Source of the DNA: Macrostomum lignano
Taxonomy: Eukaryota
DNA: 64,000 bases
Direction of reading: 5' to 3'
Assembly: GCA_002269645.1 (NCBI GenBank)
Contig: NIVC01002176.1
Location: forward strand, 62,001-126,000
In this document: in pieces, positions 25,540 through 62,239 of the stretch
Numbering within the stretch: the first letter of the stretch is position 1
Layout of the letters: each line of letters starts with the position of its first letter
Made by a program: the position numbers and the translations under genes
The notes under the pieces: model-generated
The model's database searches: none
Told to the model about the DNA's origin: nothing
The model's input: the letters and a program-made list of their open reading frames with translations, nothing else

Positions 25540-26035
<496 letters not shown>

Positions 26036-27425: not shown

Positions 27426-30400
27426 ATGGAAGTCAAAAATGCAGCAGCGGCCCCCAAATCCAACGGAGACCCTCCGCAGTTGCAGTCGCCTCGGCGACAC
27501 CTGTCGCTGCTGCGGTCCAACCTGCTGCGGACGGTGAACTACTGCCTGCTGTTCTCCCTGGTCGGCATGTCGGACGCCAGCTTGGGGCCGCCCTGCCTGG
27601 ACTGGCCTGTCTGGCGAGAACAAGCGAGCAGAGAATCGCCTTCCTGTTCCTCTTCCACGAGCTGTCAGTGCTCATGGTCACCCTGGCGGTGGGCTGCCTG
27701 AATAGAAGGCAAGTTCAACACAAATAATGAGACAAATCATCACTGATGGCAGACACAAATCATCACTGATGACAGACACAAACCATCACTGATGACAGAC
27801 ACAAATCATCACTGATGACAGACACAAACCATCACTGATGACAGACACAAATCATCACTGATGACAGACAGACACAAACCATCACTGATGACAGACAGAC
27901 ACAAATCATCACTGATGACAGACACAAACCATCACTGATGACAGACAGACACAAATCATCACTGATGACAGACACAAACCATCACTGATGACAGACAGAC
28001 ACAAACCATCACTGATGACAGACAGACACAAATCATCACTGATGACAGACACAAATCATCACTGATGACAGACACAAATCATCACTGATGACAGACAGAC
28101 ACAAATCCTCACTGATGACAGACAGACACAAATCATCACTGAAGACAGACAGGCACAAATCATCACTGATGGCAGACAGACACAAATCCTCACTGATGAC
28201 AGACAGACACAAACCATTACTGATGACAGACACAAATCATCAGTGATGACAGACACAAATCATCACTGATGACAGACAGACACAAATCATCACTGAATAC
28301 AGACAGACACAAATCATCACTGATGACAGACATAAATCATCACTGATGACAGACACAAATCATCACTGATGACAGACACAAATCATCACTGATGACAGAC
28401 AGACACAAACCATCACTGATGACAGACAGACACAAACCATCACTGACGACAGACAGACACAAACCATCACTGATGACAGACAGACACAAACCATCACTGA
28501 CGACAGACAGACACAAACCATCACTGATGACAGACAGACACAAACCATCACTGACGACAGACAGACACAAATCATCACTGATGACAGACACAAATCATCA
28601 CTGATTGCAGACAGACACAAACCAACACTGATGACAGACAGACACAAATCATCACTGATGACAGACACAAATCATCACTGATTGCAGACAGACACAAACC
28701 AACACTGATGACAGACAGACACAAATCATCACTGATGACAGACACAAATCATCACTGATGACAGACACAAATCATCACTGAGCAACTCTCCCAAAATCTC
28801 AGCGCTGACTCAAGAGGCAAAATATTCTATCCATTCACATAAATATTCGAAAACTGGCTCCAAAATATTTAATCTGCCATTTTTCAATCAAAGCAAGCTA
28901 TTTCATATTCGCACTAATCTCTTAATCCGCCTTTGTGTAATTTTTCAAAGAAATGAAAATTGTCAATAGTCAAAGAAAGCCTGAAATAAAATCATTTCAA
29001 TCCCCAGCCTAATAAATTTCAAACTAAAACCCACCCTCAAAATTCGATAAAATTGCAGGAATTTCTTCACCGTGGAAACGCGTCGAGGCAGGTCAGTTTT
29101 CTGGGGAGATTTTCTAAGGGGATTTCAGATTTGTTTCGAGGATTTCAGAGCAGCTCAAAGGTAGACAGGTCTGACTCTCGTGCCGCGATTCCTGATTCTC
29201 CCGAAGGCACAGTGAGTGTTCATCGCTGACGATTAGAAAGTCCGAGAGGCCGATATGTACACCAAAGGAAGTTATTCATCCGGTACTGGATAAAGTGAAG
29301 TTATTCGTCCGGCACAGTACGGATGTGGATATGTAATAAAAACTTGTAAAACACAGGGAATACTCAAAAAAGTAGTGTATAGTTCACTTTTAGGCTAGAA
29401 GCAGAAGATTTTTGTTGTGATTAGATAGTGCTGTTTCTCAGAAATTCTAGAACTTTGAGCAAAAACTACTTGGGCATAGTCTACATGTCATTGCCCGATC
29501 CAGCAGTTTTGTATAATTTTTACCTTTATTATATTTCGTTCTATACATATCGGTATGTTTTGGTTTCACAGTAAACAGTAGTCTTAGTACAGTCAAAATT
29601 AATAACGATATTTGCTGCTCTATAACACAAACGCCAAAGTAAGGACTTAGGGTTATTACAATAACACTTGGAGTTGTAACAATAAAAAAGTGGAGTCTTC
29701 ACTACAGACTCGAACTCAGTACTGACACTCTAACATCACGCTAGTATACCTAGCTAGAAAAGATGCGCAGAGTGCCAACTCACGCAGCTCAGCCGGTACC
29801 GGACGAATAGTCACTGCCAACTAAGAATCATAAAGCAGAATGGAGTTTTTCATTTTCTCAGCACAAAACTTTGTTATTGCTTTTGATAGGACGCAGGCCC
29901 AGTGTTCATCTTTTGATGTGCTGTGCCTTTCTTATAGCTCTTATTGATATTCATAAAGCTTATAGTTTAGAAAATTGGGGTACTAGAATACAGATGTGTC
30001 AATTATAAAAATAGCACAGATAGACTCTGTCAGCTAGCTGTCAGCTATGAAAACAAAAAGGTCCTTTGAGTATATACTCAACAACATTGAGAAGTTGCCA
30101 CATGCTCCAGTGAGCAATCTCTCTTGGACTATTCTGAAATAAAAAATACGAGGAAACTGATTGGGGTAGCTTTAATCCGTCCAACTCTCGCACAAAGCCC
30201 ACCCCACTTCATTCCCCAACTAGCTTAGTTGCGTCACTCGCAAAGATTGAGAGACTCTGCCTGCACTCTCAAAAGTGGCGACCACAGACGGAATCCTCTG
30301 TGATGGCGGCTTTTCAATGTTGCTGAGTATTGTATAAATAGAGCTATAAGAAACACAGGGCATGATATCAACAAAAGATGAACACTGGACCCACCTCCTA

Positions 30401-33400
30401 TACCGAAGGCAATTACAATGCTTGTGCTCAAAAATTGAAAACCTTCATCTCCGGAATGCACTATTTTCGGTAAATCCTGCCTGATCTTAAAAATATTCCA
30501 AGTCTCCTGATAATAATAATAATAATAATAATTGATTACACCTGCCCAATGGGCAGATGTGCAACCGACAGCTCAGCCGCAGCTATTGCGCGGCGCATCT
30601 GAAGGCTGCGTACGGCTGTTCAGTCCAAGGACTGGGGGGTCGCCACACACACCCTCAATTACCCCAGCTAATGCTGGTACCCATTTTACAGCTGGGTAAA
30701 CTGAAGCAACGCAGAGTTAAGTGTCTTGCTCAAGGACACAAATTGTTGCAGAGGGATCGGGAATCGAACCCCCGACCTTCAAGTCGTGAGTCCGACACCC
30801 TAACCACTAGGCTACAACCCCAGTCTCCTGAGCAAATTACAAGTGCATTAACACCTGTACTATCTCTTGTGACTCTCTAATCGTCCAGGCATGTACACTG
30901 TCTGTGCTTTGAAGGGATAAATTTAGCGGAATCAACCAGAGTCAGGCTAGACGCGTTTACACCAGCAGAGCTGCTCCGTCATAAAGGACCCAGGCTACTC
31001 AGCTGACTATTTAAAGAGCCTGAACAATAGATTCCTGTCTCGCTGATGCACCCGGCAGGCTGGGAGTCCACCTGCTGCTGCTGATGGTGGCCACCCTGAT
31101 GCCCTGCTGCTTCCTGCTCGTGCCGCTGTGTCGCAGCCTCACCGGCCTGGCCTTCGCCTTCAGCGCCATGGGGCTGCTGGAGGGCTGCCTGGAGTTCTTC
31201 TGCAACGCGCAGCTGCTGCAGCTCTACAGAAGCCAAGCCGGGCCATTCCTGCAGGCCATGTTCTTCTGCCAGAGCCTGGGCGCCTTCGTGTCGCCCCTCA
31301 TCATCGGCGCTTTCCTGTCTCACCCGGCGCCGCACGAGTGGCTGAACTGCACCCTGCCTGAGGCGGAGGCAGCGGCGGCTGCTGCACCTCCGGCCGCTCG
31401 CGAGGTGTCCTCGGCCACAGTGTACACAGTGGACGACGAGCTAGAATCAGTGCTGTCCCAAGTTCGATACCCCTTCTTTGTGATCGCCGCTTTTCAGGTG
31501 AGAAATTTATAAAATTTCAAGTTCAAACTTTTGGTTTGAAATTGCAATTCGCAGCACCGCACTTTGCAGGCTCCGATAATGGTATCAATGTGCGTGCTAA
31601 CCTTCAAGGAGATGCTCAGAATTAACAGGACGGAGATGGAGATTCTCACGGATGATGGTGAGGCTGGAGTGGCCGTTATGTTTAGAAAATTTTTTATGCA
31701 ATCCTACATTAGATCCATGCCTCCGAGTCTTAGTTGAATATTCCAAATCAGACAACCTGCTTCTAAACCTGTCTTAAATCTCTAATCACCTGTCTCAGAT
31801 CCCTAATCATCTGTCTCAGATCCCTAATCACCTTTTTTAGATCTCTAATCATCTGTCTCAGGTCTCTAATCACCTCTCTCAGATCTCTAATCACCTGTCT
31901 CAGATCTCTAATCACCTGTCTCAGATCTCTAATCACCTGTCTCAGGTTTCTAATCACCTGTCTCAGATCCCTAATCACCTGTCTCAGATCTCTAATCACC
32001 TGTCTCAGATCTCTAATCACCTGTCTCAGATCCCTAATCACCATTTTTAGATCTCTAATCACATGTCTCAGGTCTCTAATCACCTGTCTCAGGTTTCTAA
32101 TCACCTGTCTCAGATCCCTAATCACCTGTCTCAGATCTCTAATCACCATTTTTAGATCTCTAATCACATGTCTCAGGTCTCTAATCACCTGTCTCAGGTT
32201 TCCAATCACCTCTCTCAGATCCCTAATCACATGTCTCAGATCTCTAATCACCATTTTTAGATCTCTAATCACCTGTCTCAGGTCTCTAATCACCTGTCTC
32301 AGATCTCTAATCACCTGTCTCAGATCTCTAATCACCTGTCTCAGATCTCTAATCACCTGTCCCAGATCTCTAATCACCTGTCCCAGATCTCTAATCACCT
32401 GTCTCAGATGACAAATCACCTGTCTCAGATCCATAACACCTGTATTGAACCGGTCCAAAATAACTCATAAACATAAATCCAGTATCTTTGCCGTGCACTT
32501 TAAGACCAAGATGAAGCTGAAGATGCTGATCCAGTTGCAATCAGCTCGTCAGCCACCTGCTGCATCCTGCTGTTTGCTTCGCTGTGCGCTTTCGCACTGG
32601 ATGGCATTCTGGTGAGTGACAGCCAAGGTTGCTGAGTTCTTGTCATGCCGTGTCTCCCTCATCCACCCCTCTCTACCCTCCCGTGTCTCCCTCATCCTCA
32701 CCACTCTCTACCCTCCCGTGTCTCCCTCATCCTCACCACTCTCTACCCCAGGTGTCTCCCTCATCCTCTCTCCTCTCTACCCCCGGTGTCTCCCTCATCC
32801 TCCCCTCTCTACCCTCCCGTGTCTCCCTCATCCTCTCCACTCTCTACCCTCCCGTGTCTCCCTCATCCTCTCTCCTCTCTACCCCCGGTGTCTCCCTCAT
32901 CCTCCACTCTCTACCCTCCCATGTCTCTCTCATCCTCCACTCTCTACCCTCCCATGTTTCCCTCATCCTCCACTCTCTACCCTCCCATGTCTCTCTCATC
33001 CTCCACTCTCTACCCTCCCATGTCTTCTTCATCCTCCACTCTCTACCCTCCCATGTCTTCTTCATCCTCCCCTCTCTACCCTCCCATGTCTCTCTCATCC
33101 TCCACTCTCTACCCTCCCATGTCTTCTTCATCCTCCACTCTCTACCCTCCCATGTCTCCCTCATCCTCCACTCTCTACTCCCTGGTGTCTGTCAATTTGC
33201 AGGGCAGCTACAGCAGCCTGATCTTCGCATTCTCCATGCGAACTTTGAGAACTCGAGAGGATAGAGGCAAAACTGCCTACCTGCCCGCCACTTTTTGGGT
33301 GAGTACAGCTGATACGCTTACGAAGCTCTTAAAAAATATTTTTATTAAACTAAAATGTAAGAATATTAACCATTGATATGAATAAAATTATACACAGGGC

Positions 33401-39088: not shown

Positions 39089-41839
39089 TCACAGCGCCAA
39101 CTGGCTGATCGCGTCATTCCGTCGTTTGATAAGGAAGTTGCGCAGATCCTCGTTCGACCGACTGCTGCCAGGGGAGTCGCCGCCGCTGCCGCCGATGCCA
39201 GCGGCAACTCCGCCAGTCGGCGACGAAACTACCGAGGCGGAGCCTTCGCGCTGGTGCCGACGCTTCCGGTGCCGATGCTTGTGCCGCTTCTGCTTGGAAT
39301 GCTGGCGGCGCTGCTTCTTGGCTTTGCGCTCAGAGGAAGACGGTGGTTGCTGAGCCACCGCAGCAGCAGCTGTCGATGCCGCGGCTGCCGCAGTCCGCTT
39401 GCCGGCCGTCACCACCGACACCATGGATGTCGGCGCCAATTTACTGCGTCGCTGCTGCTGCTGCGGCGAGGACGACGAAGCGACCGACGACGAGGCAGAA
39501 TTTGCCGAGTCGGCCGACACGGCACGACGATGTCGAGACCGACCGGAGCGACCGCGACTGCGGCTTCGGCTGCGCCGATGCTCGCGCGGCTGCCGTCGGC
39601 GCTTCTTCTTGCGCCGGTCGGCTGCAGAGACCGAAGCCGACGAGCTCGAGCTCGAGCGGGAACGCGACCTTCGGGGCGGCTCGCCCACGGAACTGCCTGC
39701 CACCGCCGCTGGAGCAGCAGCCGGAACCGAAGCCGCCGAAGACACGGCAACAGCAGCAACAGCAGCAGAAGCCGAGGAAGACGGCGCCGTTGAAGCTGAC
39801 GACAACTGCAACGGCAAAGACATCGGCGGCAGTGGCGGCTGCTGCTGCTGAGGATGCTGAGGAAGATGATGATGATAGTTCTGAAGCTGCTGATGGTGCG
39901 GCATCATCAAAGCGGCAGCCGGATTCGGGAAACCGGCACCAGCCCCGACCGGAACAGGAGCGAATGACGGATGCGGAGGCTGATACAGTTGAGGATGCTG
40001 CTGAGGATGATGAAGCTGAGCATGCTGCTGCGGTGCCATCTGCTGCATAGGATAGCCAGCCTGGTTGATAAACACAGGCGGCCGAAACGACTGATTGATT
40101 TGCATCGCCTGCGGCGGCATAGAACGAGGCTGATGAGGCTGTATTGGCGGATGCTGAGGCGGATGCAATACTTGATGATGCTGCTGATGCTGAGGTTGTT
40201 GCTGCTTCTGTTGTTGCGGCTGCTGTTGCTTCCGCTGATGCGGCTGGCTTCTTCTAGCAGACGACTGACGACGATCTGAAGGCGATGACGATTGCGACAC
40301 TGTCCTGGCCAGCTGCCGCTTGGCTCCCGTTGATGAGGCGGATGAAGCAGCCGCAGCGTCATCGGGTGCAGCGTCAACTGGCGGCTCGTCGAACAGCAGG
40401 TCGGTGCAATCGTCCAGCACGAGCTCGTCCACTGAGTTGAAGATTTCTACTGAGGACTCTCCCTCATCGTCCTCCTTCACAGCATCCGAGTTTGCTTCAG
40501 CCTCATCATCCTGGGCTTCTTCTTGAACCGGCTGCTCCTCTTTCTCGTCGGCAACCGACGCAGCGGCTGAGGAGGCCGCCGAAGGCGACGACGATCTGAG
40601 CAGCGACTCCTCCTCGTCCGTGTCCAGCGTGCACGGTGCCGATTCCACTGGCGGCGCCGTAGCGCCAGATCTTTGCTGCGGCGGGTTCGCCTCCTCGAAT
40701 CCGTTGCCTAGCAACAGCGACGCCGACGCTTGGGCGACGATTTTACTATCGGCTTTGCTCTTTTGATCTTTGCTATCAGCATCCTCAGAATCCTCAGCAT
40801 CCTCATCATCTTCATCATCGTCCTCTTCGACATCGTCTCGAATTCGATCAAATTTCCCGTGTCCTGTGAGTCGCTGCTGACTTGTAGTTGCTAAGGGCTG
40901 CTGCGGCTGTTGTTGCTGCTGCTGTCTCTGCGGCTGCTGGGTGACTGGAGCTCTACTGGCCGTGCTGGGAGCTGGCGGAACCGCCGAAGCCGCTGCAGGT
41001 TTGGCATCCCCCGGCCTGTGCTGTCGCCGAGTCAACACCAACAGGTTGGCCCGACGGTTGTGCTGGGAATAAATGAATAAGAAAGTTTGTTAGCTGGTGC
41101 TGTGACGTGAGGCCACTGACATTTTAAACCAATGAGTCGAGCTTTGCCATGCATTTTTATAATATTTAGGTACAGGAAATGTACGAAGAATAACAATATT
41201 TATTCTACGTAGGATAGCAATAACAATTTTTGTCCTTCATCCTTCTATCCTAATTGACCTGTGTGATCTGCAACGCGTCTGAAACGACTCTGGGGTGACT
41301 CCGGGACGCTTCTTGGCCTTGGCCAACTATCCTTTCTTTTGTCCTTAAGGTAGTAGGCAGAATTGAGCAATAGAATTAGACACGGGACAATATGCTTTTA
41401 CACTACTGTCAGTAGTTTTAACCAGAGAAAATAATTAGGTCACGTGACGCTATTGTGATGCAACAGTTGCCACTGAGTCGCATTAGACGCGTTTGAGTTG
41501 TTAAAAGAGTCACAAGAGTCGACCCAGACGTACAAGAGTCACAAGTCACTAGATAGGTATCGTTTTCAATGGGGTAATTAGAAGCACACCAATACTGGTC
41601 TTTCTGATTTCTCTCACCTGATAGCTACCAGCTCGAGCATCGAACCTCTGCCCAGAAGCTGTAGCAGTTGAAGGGGCAGCAGTTGCAGCCTTGATACTGT
41701 TGAGTTTCTGCTCAGGCTGAGCAATGGCAGGCTTGCTACTGACAGGCGGCTTGGCAACTGGAGCAGCGGCAGGTGCGGCCGGTTTGACTTTGCCACGCAG
41801 GCTGGCCAGTGCGGCAAGCCGGAGACTCTCGAGATCGTC
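39089..41839 (-). CDS. Low-complexity (acidic, Q/P/H-rich, RS-like, K/R-rich) probable nuclear protein; exons 41839-41618 and 41062-39089; start exon not identified
   Basis: 1974-nt open exon plus a 222-nt phase-0 exon (DDLESLRLAALASL...), both with canonical splice sites. SRSRSRGRS and KKRRR/KHRHRKRR tracts suggest an RS-type nuclear protein. No family recognised. Confidence 0.75.
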
Positions 41840-44479
41840 CTGTGAGTTCAGAGTTGAGCATTGTGGTGTAATGAAGATTTGGTTCATTTTTTTAATACCA
41901 CTACATCTCCATCTAGGTATAAATTTAAATAAGAATATACGATTCTGATACATAGCGAATGACATTGTATCAGATTTGTATTAATTACCAGAATTACAAT
42001 CCATATTACATAAATTTCTCTGTAATTATTGCAATCAGGATTTTCATTTTAAAATGCAACAAAGTCTATACTTTGTTAGCGTTTTAACTAGTGCAATACA
42101 GAATTGTTTTATTGCCATAATTGTTGTGAAAACTTGTAAAAACTGATAAATTGACATTGTATTTGGCTGCAAGTTAGTTGCTAGTATTAGTTGCATCAAA
42201 ATATTTTTCTTGTATTTAGACATGGTTCCACGACTTACTATAGACTCTAGGCAGTGACCTTATGTCTAACTACAAGTTGAATGTTTTTACATTTTATTTT
42301 ATAGCAAATGGATTTAGAAATTTTTCACAAAAAGTTACTAGATTTCACACTAAGCCATTGTGCAATGACTTCTTTCTATTATGGTGTTTTGAAACTGTGC
42401 TCAACTCTTCAGTATTCTCTTACAATGCTGCTGCACTGCAATCTATTCTAACAAAGGGCAAAATGTGAAAATAGAGAAAAAAACAAAAGAGAAAAGGCCA
42501 TCTTTAGCCTAAGGTTTTATGGTCAAACTTGTAGGTGCATCAAAACTACTTGATATTGCACTAGAAGACTTAGAAATTCTAGATACTGACACTGTTATAT
42601 GAATCAACCTTGATAGCATAAAGATTCTATCTAAACAGACAACTCAGATAAAAGCTCAGATGCTAATACTAGTTCTAACATTGGTCCACTAGCTACTGAG
42701 ACTTTTAACAATTGTATCATCTAGTCCCTCATCATATCATCATCATATTTGCATCATCATATTTGTTAAGAGGCTGTCAAGCTCTTTGAGATACTCAGCC
42801 AAATATGACTTAAACTTAAAGGGTTGCCTAATACCTAATAGGTATACAATATTCAGTCAGCTGACTTCAATACAAGCATGCCTGATGTCATGAAGCAATT
42901 GCTTAGAGAACAAAAGCAAACAAATTGGCTACTAGTAGCAGCTTTTGAAAAAAAAACAAGAAGTGACAAACTCGATTCAAATTGAGAATATAGCTGAGTT
43001 TACCTACCACATTGGACAAATAGTTGACTTCAAATCAATTAATTATAGTGATCCCAACAACTGACATTCGCTCTAACATTTGTCACCATTGTTTATGGTA
43101 AACAAGCCCTCAAGGGTTGCTTGCTATCAAGCATAGGAATTACCAAGCAAAAGTTGTTTTCACTAGTTGAGTACAAAGATGTATTTGAAGTAATAAATGC
43201 TCACTTTCTAAAATGCTTTTGGTATACAGTAGAATCTCATGAGAATTAGGAACTTATACATGCAAACTTTTACAACTTAACTAGTCTATATATACTTTTT
43301 AAACTTTTTAAATAATGTTAGCAGTCTAATTTTTATTGTTTCTTGTAGACTTAACTTGCTCACAAAGAATGTCATTACATCTCTTTGACATTTGCTTGCT
43401 TTATCTTGTTTATTTAAATTAAAGTGTATTTTTACAAATGTATATGCATACGAGTATTGTACTGTAATTAGTTCATAATATAAAATATACTCTATATTCA
43501 ATGAGCCAATATTTTCTAACTGACCTTTACTTGCAGATGTGACCTGCTTTCAAAGTATGCCATTACATCTCTTTGACCTCTTCTTGCAAAATGCAAACTA
43601 CTCTTAGAGTAGGCCAAATTGCTTGTTTTCTCTACTATTTTCTATTTTTTAACTAATTGCCAAGTGTTATTTGATTCTTTACATTTGTCTATGTTGCTAT
43701 TTTATACTTTTTATTATTGCTTTCTAGATGTGTTAATTGTTATGTTTAGATATATACAAAAAATCAGGTTATTTTGAACTGATAATATGGCATTTAATAG
43801 CAATCCAACTTATCAAGTTAATAAGAAGTTTGACCATATTGATTATTTATCTATTGAGATTTATGTTGAATCTATTAGAATTTACAGTCTTTAAAAAGAA
43901 AACTTTAACTACACTTTGGAATTGGACTTTAGCTAGTAAAATTGAATTAGATAAATTATGTTTATTACAATTGGAAGTACTAAAAAAGAATAACATTTGG
44001 AATTTTTTAATTGCCAAAATTACAATTTTAATCAAATAATTTTAATTTATGCTATATTTTTTGTCCCATAGAAAGAGAAGAAAGAGATAAGAGAAAAAAA
44101 TTATATAGATAAATGAGCTAAGAGAAGACATTAACTTTTAGTATGCTGAATTACTATTATAATGTTTAAAAGGATCTGAGAAACAGATTTTTGAGTTTTT
44201 AGCTCTTTAGGCTACATTTGGCCTGCAAGCTAGATTTTGCCAATCCTTAGTTTGCTTTACCATTAAAAGATGAAAATTATTAGCAAAAAGTACATAACTC
44301 ACTCAATGCTAATGTGGTAGCTAATAAGGTTAAATGTTTGAGATATAGTTTATGGGCAAAAGTTGACAGAGACAAAGTAGTATAGTTTGTAGCTAAGGCT
44401 ATTAATAGAGGGGCCATGGTTACCTAAATACTGAAACTAAGTTAAACTTGTTTGACAATTATTTGTAATATATATTCAT

Positions 44480-44800
44480 GTGCTCTGTGCTCCATTTTGA
44501 GGCCTTGGACAATGGGCTCAGAGGCCAGAGTGAAGCTGTTTCAGGCAGATTGTCTTGCTATATAACACTGAGACCTAGACCCTGACAGATGCCTTTGGAG
44601 AGGCAGCAACCCAGGCAGCAAGATCAACACTGAACTCTATGCAATGGTATACCTGATATGGCTTTCTGACCTACTGCATAGGTAGCAACTTTGACTGCTT
44701 GGCCATATCATCTGCTCAGAGGCCTGCTGCCCTGAGCTGCTATACATTGTACTGCTACCCAAGTTTCAAGGACTATGTAGGCAAGACCAAGGGTGAATGG
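44480..44800 (+). mobile_element. Hypermutated copy of the RTE LINE seen at 15380-15900
   Basis: Aligns by eye, e.g. TATAACACTGAGACCTAGACCCTGACAGATGCC vs TACAACGCCGAGACCTGGATCCTGACGGATGCC. Confidence 0.8.
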
Positions 44801-45015
44801 CATATACTAACAGGCTTTGACTGATTCTGGCTCATTAGACCAGGTATGACTTTTTAGGGCTATGGCCTAGAAATACTTTCTGATTCCCCCTTTGTTGGCT
44901 ACTGCATGGTAGGGGCAAGTATTTTGTTGCTGTTTCATGTATACAACTTGTAAAATGCATTTTATTATTGATTTCTCTCATTTTAACATGATAAAATTTT
45001 GTTATTGTTGTGTCT

Positions 45016-45378
45016 TTAACCAACAAATAAAAGGTGGAGGGTTAATAGAAAATAAAATGCAGCCAAACTGGAGTAGGCATCCACTAATACCAGTAGGTAG
45101 TGCCTGTCAATTGGACCGGCAAAGTTCATGTAGACTCTGGTCCATGGGCCATCTGGCTTGGGCCATGATGTGCGAAACTTTCTGTTCCGTGGCTTTGATG
45201 TCTTGCAGACTTGGCATGTTCCCACACATGATTCTACCATCTTGTCCATCCGAGGCCACCAGTAGTGTTCTTGTAGTAGAGATTTTATGTGTGCAATCCC
45301 AAGGTGCAATCCCATACCTGTGGGCCAAGATGCTGCTATTCCAACTGCCAAAAAGCTTTGCTTTCCACAGCTAGCCAA
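45016..45378 (-). mobile_element. Gypsy integrase fragment (H2C2 zinc finger + start of core)
   Basis: HLGIAHIKSLLQEHYWWPRMDKMVESCVGTCQVC..PWTRVYMNFAGP..LVLVDAYS. Confidence 0.85.
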
Positions 45379-45394
45379 CCTGACCTAGGGCCAT

Positions 45395-45795
45395 ACCAAC
45401 TTGGTAGCCATGTGGGCTGCAAACTGGGTGAGGACTAATACAGCTGCACTGGACACTGATGTGCCATGGCTGGTAGGATTAGTAACTGCTGCTGCGTACT
45501 TCTGCGTGGCTCTGGGATGGGCCAGTCTTGAGGATGGTGATGTCATAACCAAGGCTGCGCCTGGCATGCTTGATGATGCAGGCAGAGACACAACCAAGCA
45601 TTTAATAGAAAAAGACCAGGGCTGCATGTGCCTAGCAGCTAACCTGGTACTAGGAACCAAAGTGATGTGGTGGCAAACCAACTACTATACAGGTGGCCAC
45701 ACCCTGCAAGGCTACATCTTAAAGGTACTGAAGATGTGGCCTAGGTTTGATGAAGCTCGGCTAGACATGTATATAGAAATGGTGCATACCATCAG
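45395..45795 (+). other. Unassigned protein-coding fragment; possible endogenous RNA-virus nucleoprotein
   Basis: Globular-looking ORF segment (AANLVLGTKVMWWQTNYYTG..GYILKV..MVHTI) between the Gypsy and mariner remnants. The resemblance to qinvirus-like nucleoproteins is from memory only. Confidence 0.3.
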
Positions 45796-45799
45796 CCTG

Positions 45800-46235
45800 G
45801 AGAAGAGTCTGGGCATTGATGCCATATTGATTTGGAGGATCTTGCATGAAGATCTTGGTGTCACCAAGAAAGCTGCCAAATGGGTACCACGAATCCTCTT
45901 GCCTGAGCAGAAGCAGTAGAGAATTGATTTTTGCAGAAATTTCCAAGATCAGTTCAAAGATGGAGTATCTGCAAACTTCTAGAACATCATCACAGGTGAT
46001 AAAGCCTAGTTCCATCAGTACGACCCGCCAACTAAATCACAGTCAATGCTTTGGTCACTCAAAGAAGCCCCACCTTCCCAAAAGGTGAAGTGGATGAGGT
46101 TAGCTGGGAAAATCATGTTTGCAATTTTCTTCTAGCCCAGAGGCATCATGGCTTCAGTGCCAGTTGAGCAAGGCCACACTGTGACCTTTGATTGGTATCT
46201 GACCAGCTACTTGCCCGCTGTGTTCAATTCCATTG
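45800..46235 (+). mobile_element. Mariner transposase pseudogene fragment
   Basis: ILHEDLGVTKKAAKWVPRIL..IITGDKA*FHQYDPPTKSQS..AGKIMFAIFF..GHTVTFDWY; several TAG stops. Confidence 0.85.
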
Positions 46236-47518
46236 CACCAATGCATATGTATATATATATGACTGCTAGGCTAGCTAACCTGGTCAATCTAGCCACTGAA
46301 AATTGTATTGGACCGAGGATAAGTAAAAAATTTCTATCCAAAAAGAATATAGAAGTACTACTAATTAGATGATAAGGCACTTAGCCTTCAGAAGACAATC
46401 ATATTCCCTAGGTTTTTTAAGGTTGGAAATCTAGTTGCCAGCTGGCCCTTAGTGCTCAAAATCCAGATCTAGGTAACTTGTCATATTTTTATTCATCAAC
46501 TATGTTGACAAGTTTATCATGGTTTGCATAGTGCGTAAACTGATATGTAATATAACAAAGTGTATAGAAGCAAGAGATGGAAATAGAAGCAAAAGCAATA
46601 AGGCTTGAATTTATATGTGCATACAAAGTTACTTAAGTATTCTTTTTTATTAAATTACATTTATTAAAACTGATTAGAATTAAAATTGATTTTACCATTG
46701 CCAATGACATCCTGACAATTAATTGCAGTTCCTTAGCTACTTATTGAAATGGAAGATTCTTAGTTTCATTGTTTTAATTGTATCATCATTGTATCTTATA
46801 TTTGATCATGTTGTACATGGTAGACTGCTGGGTGCTGCAGTGTGCTGCTGTATCTTATCTAGTCAATCTACCAAAAAGACATTCTGTAGCAATAGACAAT
46901 CTGCCTATCTGGCAATAGTAAAGTAGACATTGTCACAATTAACAATTGTCATGTCTTGTGCCTAAAAACTAGCATTACAATGACATGGCTTAGCTCATTG
47001 CTTTTATAAATCTGTATTATCTGTGTACTAAGATAGTTGCACATACTGTACTTTGCTGAGGAAGTTACCAGTTGATAAATTTACTAGCACCCTAAAATCT
47101 AGTTTTAATGACTATTTTTAGTTACCTATTGGCAACTATCCAAATTCTTGAAGATATTTTCAAGGCTAAGTTTAAATAGCAGAAATTAGTTCTCTCAACT
47201 CTAAGATTACTATGGTGCTATGGTTTCTATAGTGCAAACAATAACAAACTAATAATACCATCATATGATTAATTTATATAGCATATTTAACACACTTATA
47301 AAATCATTTTTTAATTGGCAATTGGCATAGGGAAAATAAAGTTGCCAGATTGGCCTCTGATACCAAAACTTCAATTGCCAATAAGATTTTCAAGAGGCCA
47401 AAAAACCTTATACAGTCCAAAAACCCAGGTTATTCCTACTATTTGAGGTAAGGTAGCACGCTTTAGAAGGCAGAGAAAAACAAAAGTTAAAATCAACATA
47501 GATTACAATTAATTCTTT

Positions 47519-47563
47519 CTACCGACGCGTTTCGGACCAACAATGGCCATCTTCAGGGTCTAG
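47519..47563 (-). ncRNA. Minimal type I hammerhead ribozyme in the Penelope pLTR
   Basis: CUAGACC-CUGAAGA-UGGCC-AUUGUU-GGUCC-GAAA-CGCG-UC^GGUAG: intact CUGANGA/GAAA core, stem II, palindromic stem III (ACGCGU), GUC cleavage triplet. Confidence 0.8.
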
Positions 47564-48120
47564 TGTATTTTTAACACTCACAACAACTTTATATAAGTGA
47601 ACAAATGTTAACTGTACAGTCCAAAGGGCATGTCATGGGCAGAATTTTCCAAAAATGTTAAGCATAGATTGCAAGTACATTGTTCAGACTTGTGCCTTTA
47701 CTTAGAATACCTTGAGCAAATGGCCCGCACCACTATGGGAGAGCTGAATATTCAGATTAGGTTTTTGGTCTTTAATGTACATGGATTCAAGTATGTTGAG
47801 TCTAAAATCAGTTCTACACCGATCAATAATTTTAAACTGCTGAGTTTGCTCAATTTTGCAACAACTGTTGCAACTGAGCAGGTGGTCTTGGATAGCCGAC
47901 CTTTTCAACCAATGCTCTCTGACTCTGGTGTACAGGTGCCTTTTAGTTTTACCTATATAGGTAATGTTCTGGTCAACAGAACAAGAGAATTTATACACAA
48001 CACCTGCCGCCAGAACAAGAGGAACATGGGATTTCAGTCTACTAACGTATTGGCCAACCTTAGCAGACTGAAATCCCATGTTCCTCTTGTTCTGGCGGCA
48101 GTGTGAGTGTTAAAAATACA

Positions 48121-48165
48121 CTAGACCCTAAAGATGGCCATTGTTGGTCCGAAACGCGTCGGTAG
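48121..48165 (+). ncRNA. Inverted hammerhead copy with core mutation CUGAAGA to CUAAAGA (G5A), predicted inactive
   Basis: Identical to the 47519-47563 motif except A at 48130. Confidence 0.7.
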
Positions 48166-49549
48166 AAAGAATTAATTGTAATCTATGTTGATTTTAACTT
48201 TTGTATTCCTACTATTTACTTAGTTATATATGCATATAAAGTAATTTTACTCTTTACTTTTTTAAGGGAGGCCATAGCCCAGCGATCTAGCATAGGCTCT
48301 AGTGTGCCAGTGACCTAGGCTCAATTCCAAGTGCAATCATAAATTTGGGGCTAAATTAGAATCTCGGCTTGGCTCTGCTTGTGCAATTAACAGCCTTGAG
48401 AACCAACCCCCCCCCCCAATGTGCAGTGAAGTATACACGCCTAATTATAAAATAAAGGGTCACCAATCACTTTGGCGACAGGTCACTTTGGCGACAGTCA
48501 CTTCAGCAACACATTTGGCTTACTTTGGTGATAGACATATATTGCATAAGCAGTAACCCTGGTAGTGCCTAAAATAAAAAAGAAAGCAATTAAAAACAAA
48601 TGCAAGAATAACAAATTTATAGCACCAAGTTTTTTACGCATTGTAATAGAAAGCATTGCAATTATTTTGTTCTAAAAAAATACTGGTATACTGAATACAT
48701 TACACACTTATACATATACAGTGTTTAGATATTCTTGTTCAAACAAAATTGTCTTTCATTTCTCCATCTCTCTTCTCTCTTAATCTCTACCTGTTCCCCT
48801 TCTCTCTCTCTCTTTTTCTTTCTCTCCAATGCATTAGTTGTACAGGTTAACTCGCATAGCTGGGTATTAGTAGAATGGGAAAAGGCTGTCCTTCTCTGAA
48901 TACATTAAATACATGTACGAGCTGCCTACATGTACATATAACTTTAACTGCGCTGCAGGAAACATTTTCTAATTTTTTTTCAGAGCACGTGGATACAGAG
49001 CACGATGTATTTGCCACGAGAGATCAGTCTACAAAAAAGCCACTCGAACTAACAATGACATTGAGAGCTTTCACAACCGTTTGAACAGTTGGGCTCAACG
49101 CAGTCAGCTCCAGTTCTACCTCCTGGTCAAGCTGCTACACAACGAGGGCCGCATGGTCTCTATTGACTCGCGGTTGGTGTCACAAGGTGCTCTGAGGCGG
49201 TTGCAGCGAAAGAAGTACCGCCAGCGACAGTCCAAATACTTCAAACTTTGGTTGGAATATCAAAGTTGGAGACCAATCGATTCAGTCACTTTTGGAGGCT
49301 TGCAGCAAGCTGAATAGACTGTAAGCTGTCTAAGGTGCATCTGCATATGCTTAACTTCTGTAATACTAAGACTTCTTTGTGTGCTACATATAACATCTTT
49401 GCTTTTAATGCATGTTTATTATTCTCTTTCTTTTTTTTTATTTCTGCAACAGAGTGACAAAGTGTATATGCTTGTATTGTACATATACTTGTGTATGTCA
49501 AATAGATTTATCACAATACTTCCTATATACTAAAAATGGTCTGTCTGTG

Positions 49550-49582
<33 letters not shown>

Positions 49583-50149
49583 GTGATCGATTAGAGAAAA
49601 AATGGCTGGACCGATTTTGTTCAAACTTGCACTGTTCGATCAGAAATTTTCCCGTGACTGTACATGCATCGCGGCTAAGAAATTGCTCGATGCTAAAGGC
49701 ATTAAATATTCGAAAAACATGCTTTTTTGCAAAGGTCAAGCAAACTTTTCGACTTGAAATGCATTGTAAGAATGCTAGAGAAAAAACTGACTGGTTGAAT
49801 TCTGATTCTGAAATAGATTGCATCATCACTGAATTGTAACTCCGACTTGAATTGAAAATGCAGTGTGGAAGCGTAGCACCAGACTTGATTTAAATTGCGT
49901 AACCATATTGTTAACTGATACTGACTGACTGAGAAACTGATTATGTCATAACTGCTTCGTGTGATTTACTCTATGCTTGGATTTTAAACTGTTGAATTAT
50001 ATATATATATATAAGTGCAAAATTTGATGTTATCAAAAAGATGAGAACTAGCCTAGAGGTGAACAGACTGAACTGCTAAATGCAGCGACGATGGTTCGAA
50101 TTTTCATAGAGTATAATTTTTTTAATTAAAGCTTTTCAACGTCAGGAAA

Positions 50150-51185
50150 ACTAAAAGACTTTTTAAAAAGAAGCGTCATGTAAAAATCATAGTAGCGTCA
50201 TGTAAAAAATCGTAGAAGCGTCATATAAAAAATTATAGAAGCATCATATAAAAATCATAGATGCGTCATTTAAAAAATCATAGAAGCATCATATAAAAAT
50301 CATAGATGCGTCATTTAAAAAATCATAGAAGCATCATGTAAACAATCATAGAAGCATCATGTAAACAATCATAGAAGCGTCATATAAAAATCATAGAAGC
50401 ATCATATAAAAATCATAGATGCATCATAGATGCCTAGAGGTGAACAGACTGAACTGCTAAATGCAGCGACGATGGTTCGAATTTTCATAGAGTATAATTT
50501 TTTTAATTAAAGCTTTTCAACGTCAGGAAAACTAAAAGACTTTTTAAAAAGAAGCGTCATGTAAAAATCATAGTAGCGTCATGTAAAAAATCGTAGAAGC
50601 GTCATATAAAAAATTATAGAAGCGTCATATAAAAATCATAGATGCGTCATTTAAAAAATCATAGAAGCATCATGTAAAAAAATCATAGTAGCGTCATGTA
50701 AACAATCATAGAAGCGTCATGTAAAGAATCATAGAAGCGTCATGTAAAAAAATCATAGATGCGTCATTTAAAAAATCATAGAAGCATCATGTAAACAATC
50801 ATAGAAGCGTCATTTAAAAAAATCATAGAAGCGTCATATAAAAATCATAGATGCGTCATTTAAAAAATCATAGAAGCGTCATGTGAAAATCATAAAAGCG
50901 TCACGTAAAGAATCATAGAAGCGTCATGTAAACAATCATAGAAGCGTCATGTAAACAATCATAGAAGCGTCATGTAAACAATCATAGAAGCGTCATGTAA
51001 AAAATCATAGAAGCGTCATGTAAACAATCATAGAAGCGTCATGTAAACAATCATAGAAGCGTCATTTAAAAAATCATAGAAGCGTCATGTAAACAATCAT
51101 AGAAGCGTCATGTAAAAAATCATAGAAGCGTCATGTAAAAATCGTAGAAGCGTCATTTAAAAATCATAGAAAATCATAAAAATCA
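50150..51185. repeat. ~22-bp minisatellite (AAAAATCATAGAAGCGTCATGT), with a ~380-bp tandem duplication (50050-50430 repeated from ~50432)
   Basis: Direct repetition; the unique segment GCCTAGAGGTGAACAGACTG... occurs twice. Confidence 0.92.
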
Positions 51186-52014
51186 AAAATTAAATGCAGC
51201 TATAATGCTGTGCTGGGGAGAAAAACTGAGACGTAAAGGCTCTCAGAGAATAACTGCTGAGATTATGGGGGGGGTTTCTGAGATGTCAAAGCAAAAGTCA
51301 GAAGCTACTTCAAAGTTCATGTACTTTACTCAATTTTTTTATTGCATTCTTTGTTGGCTCGCCACGGGAGGCGCTTATAGAAGAAGAGTCATGTAAAAAA
51401 TAAAAGTAGCACTACGAGCGTATGTACGAGCTATACATAAAAGAAAAGTCATGTTCAAGTTAAAAGATTCATTTGGGAATTGCTACGATGTCAAAGCTTG
51501 GTGGAAATCGTTATAGTGCTGTGATTCTTAAAGAAGGAATCACTAAAATGTCAAGGCTTAGGGGAGAAGAATTGCTGAGATTTCAAGGCTTTAGGTTGGG
51601 TTAAAGTTAGGTTTAGGTCAGGTGTGGGTTGAGGGTTATATTTTATCGGGTTTCAAGGTTAACAGAATAACAGGGGATTTTTTAGATTTCAAGGTTTATG
51701 GAGGCCATCGCTGACATGTTAAGGCTTACGGGGGAATAGCTGAGATGTCAAGGCTCACGGGGTATAAATGAGATTTCAAGGCTAAAGTCAGAAGCTACAT
51801 GTAGTTTATTGAAAACTTTTTATTACATTATTTGATGCCTCCTCAGGGGAGGGATCGCTGATAAAAAAAGCGTAATGTAAAAAATAAAAGAAGCTTCATG
51901 TCGAAGTTAAGAGATTCATTTGGGAATCCCTACGATGTCGAGGCTTGCAGGAAATCGCTATAATGCTGTAATAGTGCTATAGTGACTCTTAGAGAGAATT
52001 ACTGAAATTTCAAT

Positions 52015-52077
52015 GTTAGGTTAGGGTTAGGGTTAGGGTTAGGGCTAGGGTTAGGGTTAGGGTTAGGCTAGGGTTAG
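52015..52077 (+). repeat. Interstitial telomeric repeat (TTAGGG)~10
   Basis: Mostly perfect TTAGGG units with two variants; a degenerate tract lies at ~51595-51640. Confidence 0.9.
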
Positions 52078-55000
52078 AAGGTTGACAGATATTTTTAGAT
52101 TTCCAAGGCTTATTGGGGGCATTGCTGAGATGTCAAGGGGGGAAGTTGATATGTCAAAGCTTGTGGGGGGGAATTACTGACATGTCAAGGCTTACAAGGT
52201 TTGACAGGAGATTTTTTAAGATTTCAAGGATACATGTAGCTTATTAAAAAAACGTGTATTGCATTTATTTGGCTCCCCAACGGGGGGCATAGATTGCTAG
52301 TATATTACTATATAATGCAAATCAATTCATTTTGTACTTTATTGTAATGGGCAAATATCAATCAAGGAAACGTGATATCAATCTGTTAATTTAATTATTG
52401 TTCATAACAAAATACTAAAAATTTGCATTGCTTTTTTAATAAATCTAGATAAATCATACTTTTTAATCGTCAAGTTTCATTGGCAAAAAATACGTGTTAT
52501 TATAAATGTGCTCTAAACAAAGAACATATAGTATTTAGCTAATTGTCGCTGAAGTGATCCAAATATGTCGCCAAAGTGACTGTCACCGAAGTGACTGTCA
52601 CCGAAGTGACTTGTTGCCGAAGTGATTGTAATTCAAATAAAGCTATACACTCCTATGTGAGTGTGGGCCTGTGTACGTATCTGCGCACTTATATGCCTAC
52701 TCAAGGGAGTCGGTGGAATGGGCAATAATGCCTCTCGCCAGTTGTGTGCCTATGTCGCTTAAAGTGCACCAGGGTGCGTACAATCTACTAGCCTCTAATA
52801 AAAAAAATTACTCTTTTAATCTTTTGTATAAGAATCTTTGCATGGCCTTTTGAAGTACCTCTATATAATGTTACTGTGTCAGTAGGTTTTGGTAATTCTA
52901 TTTCAATAGGATTTTAGAAAAGTACAATAGGCTATGAAATAGTAAGATTGCCATTGGTATTTTGGCATTAAGCCCTATAACGCTATAATATAACATTATT
53001 TAAGATCTTTATTAATAAAAATATTAAAAAACATACATAAATATATATTTGTCCATTGTAATTATTATTAGATTACTTACTAGCTCATCGTCACAATGAT
53101 TTTGTCCTTGATTGCCTGCATTATTAGATTCCATATCAAGCCCAACCAACTGAAGATTGGCAGGCAGTTTTGGCAGATAGTTTAGCCTAGTCAATTAGCA
53201 GAGATTAAGTGTAAAGCTTTTAATTTTTTTGAATGCATGAAAACTATATAGCCAACCTAAATCTATGATTTCAATGGCTTCCAAATATACTGGTACAACT
53301 ATTTTTATTCAAGCACAAATATATAGCACTTTATAGTAGGCCTGTCAAGTCTATGGCTATAATGGGGCTATTCCTTTCGCATCTATGGTTTAGTTTATTT
53401 AAAGTAATGTAGAGAATTTTAATAAAATACAAAACGTTATTCTTTTTTATAAACTTATGCAGTAAGTGTGAGAATGAACCAGTAAATACGATGGATAAGG
53501 ATAATACTTTAGCAGGCTCTTTAAATTCGTATATTTAGAAATAGGGGCCCGGCGCAAAAATGTATCAAACAATAATATTTGAATTTTGGTCAAAGTAAAA
53601 CAAGTACCAGCTAAAACAATAGAAAAAGCAGCATTAGAACAGATGCAGTAAAATTTGGTAAAAAAAGTAACTTTTTAAACCAAAAACGGCAATCAAAAAA
53701 AACTATCAAGAACCTAGCACAACGCTATAAACGCTATAAACGCGCGCTATCAAAATGATGCCTAGGTGTTTTTTGAAAGAACCTAAATAGAACGTCGACA
53801 GGACATTTCATAGCCCTTTTGTCAAATAGTCATTGTGTCATTTTGTTCAACGGCAGAAAGTAGATGCGTGCGTGGTGATTTAAAAGTTAAACTGGAGTAC
53901 TCTGCTTTCTACTTGACTTAACATTCTGACTGGAAAACCTCTTGCGGGAAAAGCTCGCGCGGGCAAACAACCTTGGTGGGAAAATTCTTCCTCAATTCTC
54001 AAAACGCACATTTGAGAATAAACGTACAATTTTCAAAACGTACAAAATGTACAATTTTTACGTACATGAATATAGTACAGTTAACTAGTACATGTAGGTG
54101 TACGTGCACGATAATCTGCGGATTCGTTTTCTCTGTCTGCTGAATTTAAATGTCCTACCTCGTCCATGTACGCTTGTACATATAAAATATCATAAACCAG
54201 CCGTCCAAAACCGCTGGTTTTGCTATAATTTAAAAATGCCATTAAAGCTGGGTTCGCAGCGCGATCCCGTTATGGAGAGTCCAGCATGAGGATGCTGGGC
54301 GGTCGGGAACTGGGGCCGGAGATGATTTTGGGCCTCGTGGTCCCCGGCAGATCCAGATTTGCATGGGGCAGCCAATTTAAGCCAGGGGTAACTGGCGTCA
54401 GGCTGCGCCCAATGCAAGGACTGTAACTTATGATAATTAACACATTCCTGCTGCATGCACGCCTACCGGTGTAGACAATCGTGTTGAATCGACCTTTCGC
54501 CGCTATTCACTGGGGGCGCTTTCGGTTGCCTGCTTTATCAGTTTTGGCTCCTGTATCAGATTATGGCTTTCTAAATTTGCAATTTCCACTACGTTCTGAT
54601 TCTCACCCCCCCCCCCTAGCAAACGATGACGAGCCGTACTACTGGGTGATTACCACTACCCTAGATGACATTCTGTTTCTCAAACTTAGCAGATCTTGTG
54701 CCATTCTTAGCAGATCTTCTCAATCTGCTCGGTTCTTGCATTGCAGTATCTTCTAAGAAGGGACGTACATTTGTTTTGTCATTCATTGGCTAAAGTGTTC
54801 TAGCTGAACTCTAATTTGTTTCATGACAAAAATGGGACAACATATTTAAGAAGTATGCGATTTGAAGCTATAAATAAAAAAATATAAAAGTTAAGATCTT
54901 GTACGATGTAGCAAGTCGCTCAGATCTTGTAAGTTTACCTAAGTATCACAGCGAAGATCTTGCACGCTCTTGCAAGTACTTGCGCAGCAACCCAAGAAGA

Positions 55001-55859: not shown

Positions 55860-56900
55860 TCTTTGCGCGACATGTTTTGCCGAACAATCGGCATCTTCAG
55901 GCAATAATATAGATCATGCAGAGAGGATGTGGTAATTTTTTAGTAGCCTAGTAAGTCAACATGATGCAAGTATGGGTAGAAGAGTTAGATGGCCCTAAAT
56001 AAGAGGCAAGCGCATGGGGTCAGAACACCCTTAGATGGACACTGATCGCCCCTCTACCACCAAGTTGGATTGTTCATGGCGGGCTTTAGCTGTTTAATGT
56101 ACAACGCCTCAAGAATAGACAACTTCATACTCTGGCGGTTACAATCGATAATTTCAAATTTTTCAGCATGTCTAACTTCAGCGCATTGGTTGCACATCGA
56201 TTCCTCCGAGTCAATAAATCATATCCGACATCCTGCCAGAATCGGAGACCTGCTAGATTTAGACTTCGATCGCACAAAAGTCATGCGATATATGATGATG
56301 AATATCGGCTTCTCCAGCATGACGGAACGCGATCGAGTGCTGCTTAGCGCAGACCTGGGTCTGGTGGCAACACACTTGATGGCACCAATCAAAATGATAA
56401 AAGCGACAGTGCCTAAAAAGCAAGCACCGCCACCGGTCTGTAGCAGCTGCGAGAGTACTAACTCAATGCCGCTCATCAGTGCCACAGGCGCTCACAGCTG
56501 CACTCCAAAATCCGAGCCAAAAGCCGATGGAGACTCGGACCAATTTAAAAAAAAACAGCGTCTCAGGTGAGGGCTTAAGACTCAAGCCTGCCGCCGGGCC
56601 ACCCTGCTATGCCCTAACGCGTGAGCTGTCCTCAAATGAACCGAGTTGAACAGAGTCGATTGAAGAAGAGGCTGTTAAATCCTGTTTGCAGAAGCTGATA
56701 GGCAAGTTAAAATTTGCGTCGGGAGAGTTTTCCTCCGAGCTCTAATCGACAATGTCAACGAACTTCATTGGCCTCATGACAGGGGGGTTCTTGTGAGCCG
56801 CTCTGTGTTTCACCACCTCTCCTGATGGCGAGACGAGACGGTGTGTTGGATTCTGAGGCGAGGTGTCTCCAAGATTCGCGACTGATGTGGTTGCTGCAGT
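55860..56900 (-). mobile_element. Decayed Penelope-like element with a degenerate hammerhead (55867-55902)
   Basis: EKFEIID..LSILEALYIKQLKPAMN (GIY-YIG tail, ~56065-56170) upstream of CUGAAGA-UGCCG-AUUGUU-CGGC-AAAA-CAUG-UC. The upstream limit is uncertain. Confidence 0.6.
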
Positions 56901-60920: not shown

Positions 60921-62239
60921 GCCGCTGGATAACTTAATTTCTCAGATTAGAGTACTTTTTTAATTATTTTTACCACCCATGCAAGACTTTCTTCCAAAGC
61001 ATTGATCAGACTGAACTTTCATGCAGGTAAATTCTTTTTTGTATAATTTTTTTACATCAAATAATTATCAATATATACGAGCGTAATAACGTGCAGCACT
61101 GTTCTGCTCAAGTGTACAAATCCGGTCTAATTCAGCCAATATAATTTGGCGCATTTTGGCGGAGTTTAACGTCACTTAAATCGTAGGGTGCGCGGTCACA
61201 CCCAACGACGCCGAAGAGTAGCGAAAAACGACCAGAAGTCAACTTGCATCAACTTGTACTGTACAGCAGGTCTTAATGAAACTCACAAATCATATTTGAG
61301 AATATGAGAATGAATGCGAACATTTATTCTGTAGGTTGAATCTCATCTGGTTGAAAGCCAGCATTACCGTGCATGTACGAGCTAGCTAAAGCTCCAGGCT
61401 AATACATTTTACTAGCATCAAATGAACTTCACTGCTTCTAAAATTGGTCCGTTTAAGTGTACAGTGTGGCAGGTGTCTTTGTGTTACGAATTTAGATCGA
61501 TTATTTAATTAATAATGAACGATGTCGATGCAGCGCGTGCTGAGAGTTTATTTCAATCAAATCACAATAATAATAATCTACTCTTAATATTATAGATAGC
61601 AACGAGCGTACCATAGTACTCGTAGTATTGCAATGAGAAAATGTGAGGGAAGGAGAGCGAGAGGAAGAATACATTTTATATACTGCTAGATATTTCTATG
61701 AATCATACGGTAAAACAAAAAATACGTTAATGCTAAATAAGAAAGTAAGATTTAAGTATAATGTGGAAGGAGATTACGAATATTAAGCTGTACGATACAA
61801 AAAAAGAAAAAAGGTGAAATAAAGGAAGTGACATCGTTACATTTGTATCTGAGTAGCTTTTTCATGAGTGAATTTTATTTGGTAGGTAGCATCGACTGAA
61901 ATGTATTGAAGAGCTTTTGTTTGATTCAAACGAAATATTCTGCCTTTCGGCTGACTGTTGCGAAGAAATTTACGATTCTTACAAAGTTACATGTAGAAGA
62001 TTAGGAGAGAGACGCCAGTTCAGGTGCAGCAGAATTCAAAACGGGAATTATTAGGCAAAAATGAGTTAAAAAGAGAATTGAAAATACAAAAGGAATAATA
62101 AAGTTATTCATGTAGGCCTTTGCGAAACAGTTTCAGCAGCAAGAAATGCCAAAGAGGCTGCTTAACGTTTGCTGATTGACTGGCGAAAAGGGGCTGCAGG
62201 TGGGTTGGGTCAGAGGAATATTGCGATGAAATCCTCAAC

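Follow-up and report, generated by a model that had tools for sequence, protein, structure and literature searches.

A CpG-depleted domain in a Macrostomum lignano contig as the probable footprint of germline CpG methylation

A window of 64,000 nucleotides of the Macrostomum lignano contig NIVC01002176.1 (positions 62,001–126,000 of the forward strand; all coordinates given here are those of the window) contains a 5.2 kb domain (nt 42232–47473) which has lost most of its CpG dinucleotides, only 18 being left, with an observed/expected ratio (o/e) of 0.11. The domain is made of old transposable element (TE) fragments and AT-rich filler. As the loss is specific for CpG, symmetric on the two strands, independent of the type of sequence and balanced by a gain of TpG and CpA, it points to what is likely the mutational footprint of long and heavy germline CpG methylation in an otherwise mostly unmethylated (mosaic) metazoan genome. 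A preliminary description of the same DNA had proposed a sharply bounded domain of C-to-T hypermutation at both CpG and CpA, resembling the repeat-induced point mutation (RIP) of Fungi and due to a local genome-defence or heavy-methylation process. The heavy-methylation part of this proposal agrees with the CpG specificity, the symmetry and the TpG/CpA gain reported below, while the RIP-like CpA>TpA part finds no support in the data, CpA/TpG being enriched and TpA being as expected.

Extent and Edges of the CpG-Depleted Domain

The CpG profile of the window was obtained from dinucleotide counts per kilobase and per 250 bp. The successive kilobases from 42 to 48 kb hold 3, 2, 0, 9, 5 and 8 CpG, against 25–120 per kb usually found elsewhere, with none at all between nt 43452 and 45116. 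At the usual o/e of the window (≈0.81–0.82) about 136 CpG would be expected in the core domain (Poisson P ≈ 3e-37), and the approximately 15–20 CpG originally counted between nt 42240 and 47460 were a good estimate of the 17–18 present. In each of the eleven 500-bp windows starting at 42001–47001 CpG o/e does not exceed 0.19, whereas the median of the other windows of normal complexity (n = 95) is 0.83, with a 5% quantile at 0.45. The 42–47 kb region is the sole long block of complex sequence so depleted within the 64 kb, the remaining low-CpG windows being nearly all micro- or minisatellites.

The two edges of the domain are of different kind. The left one (nt 41957–42231) is sharp, since the last dense CpG lies at nt 41956 and is followed just by those at nt 42080 and 42231; the change takes place within 300 bp (≈42.0–42.2 kb) and coincides with the 5' end of a minus-strand gene and with a drop of GC content from 0.42 to 0.29. 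The right one is graded from 47.5 to 48.9 kb, first through a Penelope-like element (PLE) in hairpin form (nt 47474–48210, CpG o/e 0.51), then through a zone (nt 48211–48900, CpG o/e 0.30) with pieces similar to short interspersed elements (SINE) at nt 48342–48534, and CpG density is normal again from ≈48.9 kb. The sharp boundary first attributed to the whole domain is thus found on the left side and not on the right.

Contents of the Domain

Each sub-part of the core is depleted, TE and non-TE sequences alike (CpG o/e 0.00–0.20). The AT-rich left part (nt 42232–44474, CpG o/e 0.06), without recognisable coding remnant, is followed by a plus-strand 3' fragment of an RTE-type non-LTR (long terminal repeat) reverse transcriptase (nt 44475–44746), which has no CpG (o/e 0.00) and is a decayed relative of a copy located at nt 15442–15754. 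A minus-strand LTR-retrotransposon fragment (nt 45016–45750; CpG o/e 0.16, measured over nt 45061–45750) carries an integrase H2C2 zinc-binding domain in the open reading frame (ORF) at nt 45016–45378 (Pfam 1e-12) and adjoins a plus-strand mariner transposase fragment (nt 45751–46235, CpG o/e 0.20), beyond which lies a second AT-rich part (nt 46236–47473, CpG o/e 0.09). GC content outside the TE fragments is in the range of 0.23–0.36.

The mariner fragment, weakly similar to Mos1 (PDB alignment, E 0.009), can be read in a single frame with no indels and with four in-frame stops, all TAG and none TGA. Of the TGG>TAG change formerly proposed, only one case is seen, at a Trp conserved in Mos1, which is too distant to reveal more; the other three stops are opposite E, H and D, and their direction of change cannot be told. 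When the mariner and integrase fragments were used in word-indexed protein searches, no matches were returned, and a scan of metagenome DNA gave 0 matches for a degenerate RTE pattern and chance matches only for a SINE 16-mer, against which blastn of the window gave 0 hits.

The Penelope-like hairpin is a younger insertion at the right edge. Its arms, 109 nt long and 97% complementary, differ at three of 109 sites (G/A, T/A and T/C), and an inner 45-nt palindrome is present at nt 48004–48101. A GIY-YIG ORF is located on the minus strand (nt 47702–48079), its N-terminal peptide having a mirror image in the last part of an ORF on the plus strand, and a further GIY-YIG-related stretch, matching the PLE, was observed at nt 56072–56194. 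A CTG>CTA change in a hammerhead ribozyme had also been listed among the signs of hypermutation; an Rfam search of 41.5–49.5 kb gave no hammerhead, even at E ≤ 1. The TE repertoire as a whole, that is a PLE with GIY-YIG, RTE, mariner and an LTR element with reverse-transcriptase-bearing relatives, supports a metazoan origin.

Dinucleotide Composition

Strand-symmetric dinucleotide odds ratios were regressed on GC content across 95 control windows and the residuals of the domain were taken. The CpG residual was −0.70 (p 8e-7), while CpA/TpG (+0.22, p 3e-4), AG/CT (+0.17, p 0.0015) and GpC (+0.20, p 0.024) were in excess and TpA was not displaced (+0.03, p 0.55). GpC is not depleted in the domain, the loss being specific for CpG. 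Window by window (starts 42001–47001), z-scores ranged from −1.1 to +1.3 for TpA and were up to +3.3 for CpA/TpG. Enrichment of AG/CT has been proposed in a 2026 preprint as a second-order marker of methylated-CpG mutability (bioRxiv 10.64898/2026.09.02.747768).

The cleanest control is the adjoining flank at nt 49301–55000 (5.7 kb), which is AT-rich and has the same GC content as the core (0.36). CpG o/e is 0.88 in this flank and 0.11 in the core, TpG and CpA o/e are 1.09 and 1.13 in the former and 1.32 and 1.23 in the latter, and TpA o/e is practically the same (0.88 and 0.90, respectively). The mass balance over nt 42232–47458 gives a deficit of 119 CpG, an excess of 103 TpG + CpA and an excess of 23 TpA; about four fifths of the lost CpG persist as the first-step product, TpG or CpA.

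RIP is indicated by a TpA/ApT index of at least 0.89, a (CpA+TpG)/(ApC+GpT) index of at most 1.03 and a composite index above 0. The corresponding values in the core are 0.98, 1.46 and −0.48. The signature of RIP, consisting of CpA/TpG depletion together with TpA excess, was not observed, CpA/TpG being enriched and TpA lying at its GC expectation. In RIP of the Neurospora type CpA is converted to TpA and repeats are left depleted in CpA, the process in Neurospora targeting duplicated sequences of more than ~400 bp and more than ~80% identity (PMC3318451). A restriction to duplicated sequence was not seen either: the depletion includes sequence without any repeat in the window, the only repeats checked being those within it, and the repeated TE nest at 15–22 kb is unaffected (CpG o/e 0.82), in accordance with its first description as CpG-rich (15–21 kb).

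Comparison of the RTE Copies

Copy pairs usable for a direct comparison were searched for in the window by blastn, by blast in a purine/pyrimidine alphabet and by tblastx, and what these searches retrieved was limited to the RTE pair, some short pieces of SINE and a single PLE match (56.07–56.19 kb). The RTE copy of the domain was matched with its plus-strand sibling (nt 15442–15754) by blastn and, more fully, by the purine/pyrimidine-alphabet blast, and the pair was aligned both by a transition-lenient procedure (263 aligned sites) and, independently, by MAFFT. The sibling, with 33 CpG (o/e 1.10), can safely be taken to represent the ancestor, since CpG sites are not gained jointly by chance.

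Identity between the two copies is 67%, and 87–89% when only the purine/pyrimidine class is compared. Going from the sibling to the domain copy, the transition-lenient alignment shows 22 C>T, 20 G>A, 12 T>C, 2 A>G and 17 transversions. C>T and G>A changes make up 55–58% of substitutions (42/73 or 48/87), the others being 14–16 reverse transitions and 17–23 transversions, in addition to several indels. The previous statement that nearly all differences between the copies are C>T/G>A was hence overstated, even if the changes quoted in its support, GGCGCGCC>GGTATACC, CCACGTC>CCATATC, CCTGG>CCTAG and TGTACA>TATATA, are all present in the pair.

None of the sibling's aligned CpG survives in the domain copy, in which their place is taken by TG (8), CA (6), TA (5) or other dinucleotides (4). 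The changes are symmetric on the two strands, both in the numbers of C>T and G>A and in the numbers of TG and CA fates. Transitions hit 24/48 cytosines at CpG (25/49 in MAFFT), 9/34 at CpA (9/36), 6/39 at CpT (11/39) and 2/32 at CpC (3/35), the difference between CpG and all the non-CpG cytosines (17/105) being highly significant (p 2.5e-5). At non-CpG sites, C>T (17/105) and T>C (14/101) offset each other (p 0.70, with the low power of 263 sites), and no directional non-CpG hypermutation is present in the pair. A similar bias had been suggested for the SINE piece at nt 48342–48452; with respect to its relative at nt 599–703 it shows six G>A and three C>T against three T>C and one A>G, with no clear direction, and has a CpG in place of a TpG of the relative.

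Proposed Origin of the Depletion

In the first of the proposed steps, which the composition and the RTE pair show, 5-methylcytosine (5mC) at CpG deaminated to T on either strand, giving rise to TpG or CpA. Rates suggest that background transitions would then have turned approximately one fifth of these products into TpA, and the younger insertions at the right edge may have lost fewer CpG as a consequence of a shorter exposure. The survival of CpG (0.11/0.82) corresponds to ≈1.0 hit per CpG cytosine, and the non-CpG rate is 0.11–0.21 transitions per cytosine, an upper bound that includes the lineage of the sibling. The resulting CpG/non-CpG rate ratio of ≈5–9 is within or below the range of the 5mC excess in mammals, so that no extraordinary mutator is needed.

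Some observations weigh against germline methylation, or against its action alone. When the controls are restricted to windows of low GC, the domain has a slight surplus of TpA (0.90 vs. 0.80, p 0.012). In the transition-lenient alignment of the RTE pair, transitions are more frequent at CpA (26%) than at CpC and CpT together (11%; Fisher p 0.09), and the ~263 aligned sites leave room for a modest, about two-fold, extra effect on CpA>TpA. An o/e of 0.11 is below what is usual for methylated invertebrate gene bodies. Lastly, the gene adjacent to the left edge is undepleted, which makes the domain unlike the classic gene-body methylation of an annotated gene.

Transcription Unit or Transposon Targeting

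Methylation could have been recruited either by targeting of TEs or heterochromatin or by membership in a transcription unit. The second option bears on the minus-strand gene at nt 39089–41965, with coding exons at nt 41618–41887 (or 41965) and 39089–41062 separated by a GT donor (nt 41617) and an AG acceptor (nt 41063). A candidate 3' splice site (ctcacag|GACGAT, ≈41.85 kb) is located directly before the coding-looking part of exon 1 (DDLESLRL...), thus leaving two placements for the domain, which is either the region upstream of the gene or a 5' intron of it.

That the domain lies inside a transcription unit, as a 5' intron of this gene or as part of an unannotated transcript, and was methylated in the gene-body manner is possible, even if we consider it the less probable option. 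The candidate acceptor would allow for upstream exons, a CpG-rich patch at 49.0–49.25 kb could be a promoter, and the methylated domains of Ciona lie for the most part over genes (PMC3827831). On the other hand, the rest of the gene is undepleted, exon 2 (CpG o/e 1.08) and the intron (0.79) being CpG-rich and exon 1 with the 5' end (0.62) lying in the usual range, no exon or homologue was found in the domain, and no clear asymmetry of the type left by transcription was detected over nt 42232–47458, where C (920) and G (951) are close in number and TpG (408) compares with CpA (361), with an excess over expectation of 78 and 25, respectively. Methylation of the body of this gene is not supported in the form formerly put forward, the gene itself being undepleted (0.62–1.08). 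Targeting of the patch as TE-rich or heterochromatic sequence takes most of the remaining probability. As a separate observation, the higher number of TpG than of CpA on the plus strand may hint at a strand-biased deamination related to the direction of transcription or replication; this is statistically weak, and GC and AT skews are near zero.

Alternative Explanations

A different origin, with no methylation at all, would be that old AT-rich DNA has drifted under a GC-to-AT bias or under selection against CpG. The low GC content outside the TE fragments and the age of these fragments, judged from the 67% identity of the RTE copy to its sibling, fit this explanation, which is nevertheless very unlikely: the flank of equal GC retains a CpG o/e of 0.88, GpC is undepleted, the loss of CpG is matched by the gain of TpG/CpA and, in the RTE pair, a directional excess is seen at CpG cytosines only.

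Equally improbable is a RIP-like or CpA-methylation hypermutation which, on top of CpG decay, would have driven CpA/TpG to TpA in a bounded heterochromatic domain. Several features speak for it. In the RTE pair, 5/19 CpG underwent the double change to TpA and TG>TA or CA>TA occurs 6 times, with a TpA o/e of 0.80 in the domain fragment vs. 0.27 in the sibling; the mariner stops are TAG without exception, one of them at the conserved Trp; and the TpA excess over the low-GC controls and the higher CpA transition rate mentioned above go in the same direction. Against it, the double changes fit a per-site background of 0.16–0.21 (binomial P 0.18–0.37), and the premise on which they had been given weight, that deamination of 5mCpG gives TpG/CpA and then stops, overlooks background transitions acting on these products in an element that is ~33% diverged. 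Neither the TpA residual after correction for GC nor the comparison with the GC-matched flank leaves any excess of TpA. As to the preference for CpA, in three of its nine events TG stands opposite CA, a sign that an ancestral CpG took a different path of decay in each copy; once they are dropped p rises from 0.09 to 0.35, and after MAFFT realignment CpA (25%) is not above CpT (28%), so that the CpA>TpA preference first reported is not upheld. Moreover, CpA/TpG is enriched (index 1.46, composite −0.48), C>T outside CpG is offset by T>C, and depletion affects sequence without detectable repeat in the window and leaves the repeated TE nest untouched.

An even more doubtful version would be a real germline process directed at CpA, due either to a RIP-like deaminase or to the deamination of cytosines methylated outside CpG in the DNMT3 manner, acting atop 5mCpG decay in bounded heterochromatic domains, speeding up TpG/CpA>TpA and making stop codons in TEs.

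Editing of retroelement cDNA by an APOBEC/AID-type deaminase before integration can be rejected. C>T/G>A changes do dominate in a retroelement fragment, and editing of this type has been documented for LTR elements of vertebrates (PMC4866542). Here, the changes are CpG-centred and symmetric (22 C>T and 20 G>A), which contradicts a strand-specific, non-CpG motif confined to retroelements, and a DNA transposon (mariner) and non-TE sequence are equally depleted. An assembly chimera or a foreign insert from a CpG-depleted genome, which the sharp left boundary and a composition unlike the rest of the window might suggest, is scarcely credible given that the RTE fragment is related to the window's own RTE (87–89% by purine/pyrimidine class) and that the right edge is graded and has SINE and PLE insertions which look native and have related copies in other parts of the window.

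Comparison with Known Systems

The phenomenon itself is known biology, and ordinary in a patchily methylated animal genome. The closest likeness is with the mosaic domains of Ciona intestinalis (Tweedie 1997; Simmen 1999; Suzuki 2007, 2013; PMC3827831), where, as here, a discrete kilobase-scale block borders on unmethylated DNA, the dinucleotide lost is specifically CpG and the background o/e is near 1. In Ciona sperm DNA the mosaic of methylated and unmethylated domains is genome-wide, with ~98% methylation inside the domains and less than 0.5% at non-CpG sites (PMC3827831). Unlike the M. lignano domain, those of Ciona mostly correspond to gene bodies and TEs are described as unmethylated, whereas here TE debris lies beside an undepleted gene and the depletion is deeper (o/e 0.11).

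CpG methylation targeted at TEs has been reported in cnidarians and other invertebrates (Ying et al. 2022, PMC8857917) and in arthropods (Lewis et al. 2020, PMC7343188), and the present case is similar in that TE-rich sequence would be targeted in a genome not globally methylated. In those studies the youngest TEs are the most methylated, whereas here the old fragments are the most decayed, exposure being cumulative, and the young-looking nest at 15–22 kb shows no CpG loss. The decay of CpG in old repeats of vertebrates (bioRxiv 10.64898/2026.09.02.747768) shares with the domain the CpG to TpG/CpA conversion with mass balance, the AG/CT enrichment and the strongest effect in TEs, but it is genome-wide and not limited to one patch of 5–7 kb. 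With RIP of Neurospora (PMC3318451), the domain has in common C>T/G>A changes on both strands that inactivate TE copies and create stop codons; RIP, in contrast, uses up CpA/TpG and acts on duplicated sequence only, whereas here CpA/TpG accumulates and the CpG-specific loss includes sequence with no repeat in the window.

On a local scale, the domain illustrates cleanly how the composition of an invertebrate-type genome is shaped, and its transposons are eroded, by mosaic germline methylation, and shows that CpG o/e can trace past methylation with a resolution finer than one kilobase. It is also a warning, since double changes from CpG to TpA in old repeats mimic RIP unless the mass balance of CpA/TpG is examined together with the transitions in the reverse direction. 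A mutator directed at CpA in the germline of an animal would, if true, be a new and important finding, but the evidence presented here does not call for one.

Neighbouring Gene and Other Features of the Window

The product of the 39–42 kb gene is a low-complexity protein rich in Q, S and R, with poly-Q and a Ser/Arg/His-rich composition, whose N-terminal part bears the motif DDLESLRLAALASLRGK. Nothing in Pfam matched it, and a HMMER search of its 650-aa ORF against 1.84 billion representative proteins gave 0 matches, probably due to composition filters. An exact cluster look-up of 10 proteins of the window, including the spliced model of this gene, did not match any entry.

The CpG-rich TE nest at 15–22 kb (o/e 0.82) includes plus-strand ORFs for the gag (313 aa, intact) and protease of an LTR-retrotransposon (nt 16688–18538). 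The closest database relative of the gag-protease is only 47% identical and comes from M. lignano, followed by holothurians, sturgeon, sea star and ticks; an exact look-up of the gag ORF gave no match. On the minus strand, a 154-aa ORF (nt 20834–21298) ends with a Cys/His motif, CPFCRSGSENAEHFICHCPVF, typical of the ORF2 tails of non-LTR retrotransposons, which suggests that a second non-LTR element may be nested in the cluster.

The window is unusually dense in micro- and minisatellites, and these arrays account for most of its other low-CpG windows. They are located at nt 2570–3108, 4413–5143, 10900–12627, 13533–14632, 25549–26040, 27732–28781, 31767–33178, 50169–51171 and 62237–62730, examples of their types being (TCTA)432, (CTGT)123, a 55-bp unit repeated 20 times, 27/77-bp units, 21- and 33-bp units, a 23-bp unit repeated 44 times and two 19-bp arrays. 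The 23-bp array at 50.2–51.2 kb carries one CpG in each unit, which brings its o/e to 1.59. Finally, an Rfam tRNA match on the minus strand (nt 30752–30821; 35 bits, just over the gathering threshold), not called by ARAGORN, is probably the head of a tRNA-derived SINE or a pseudogene.

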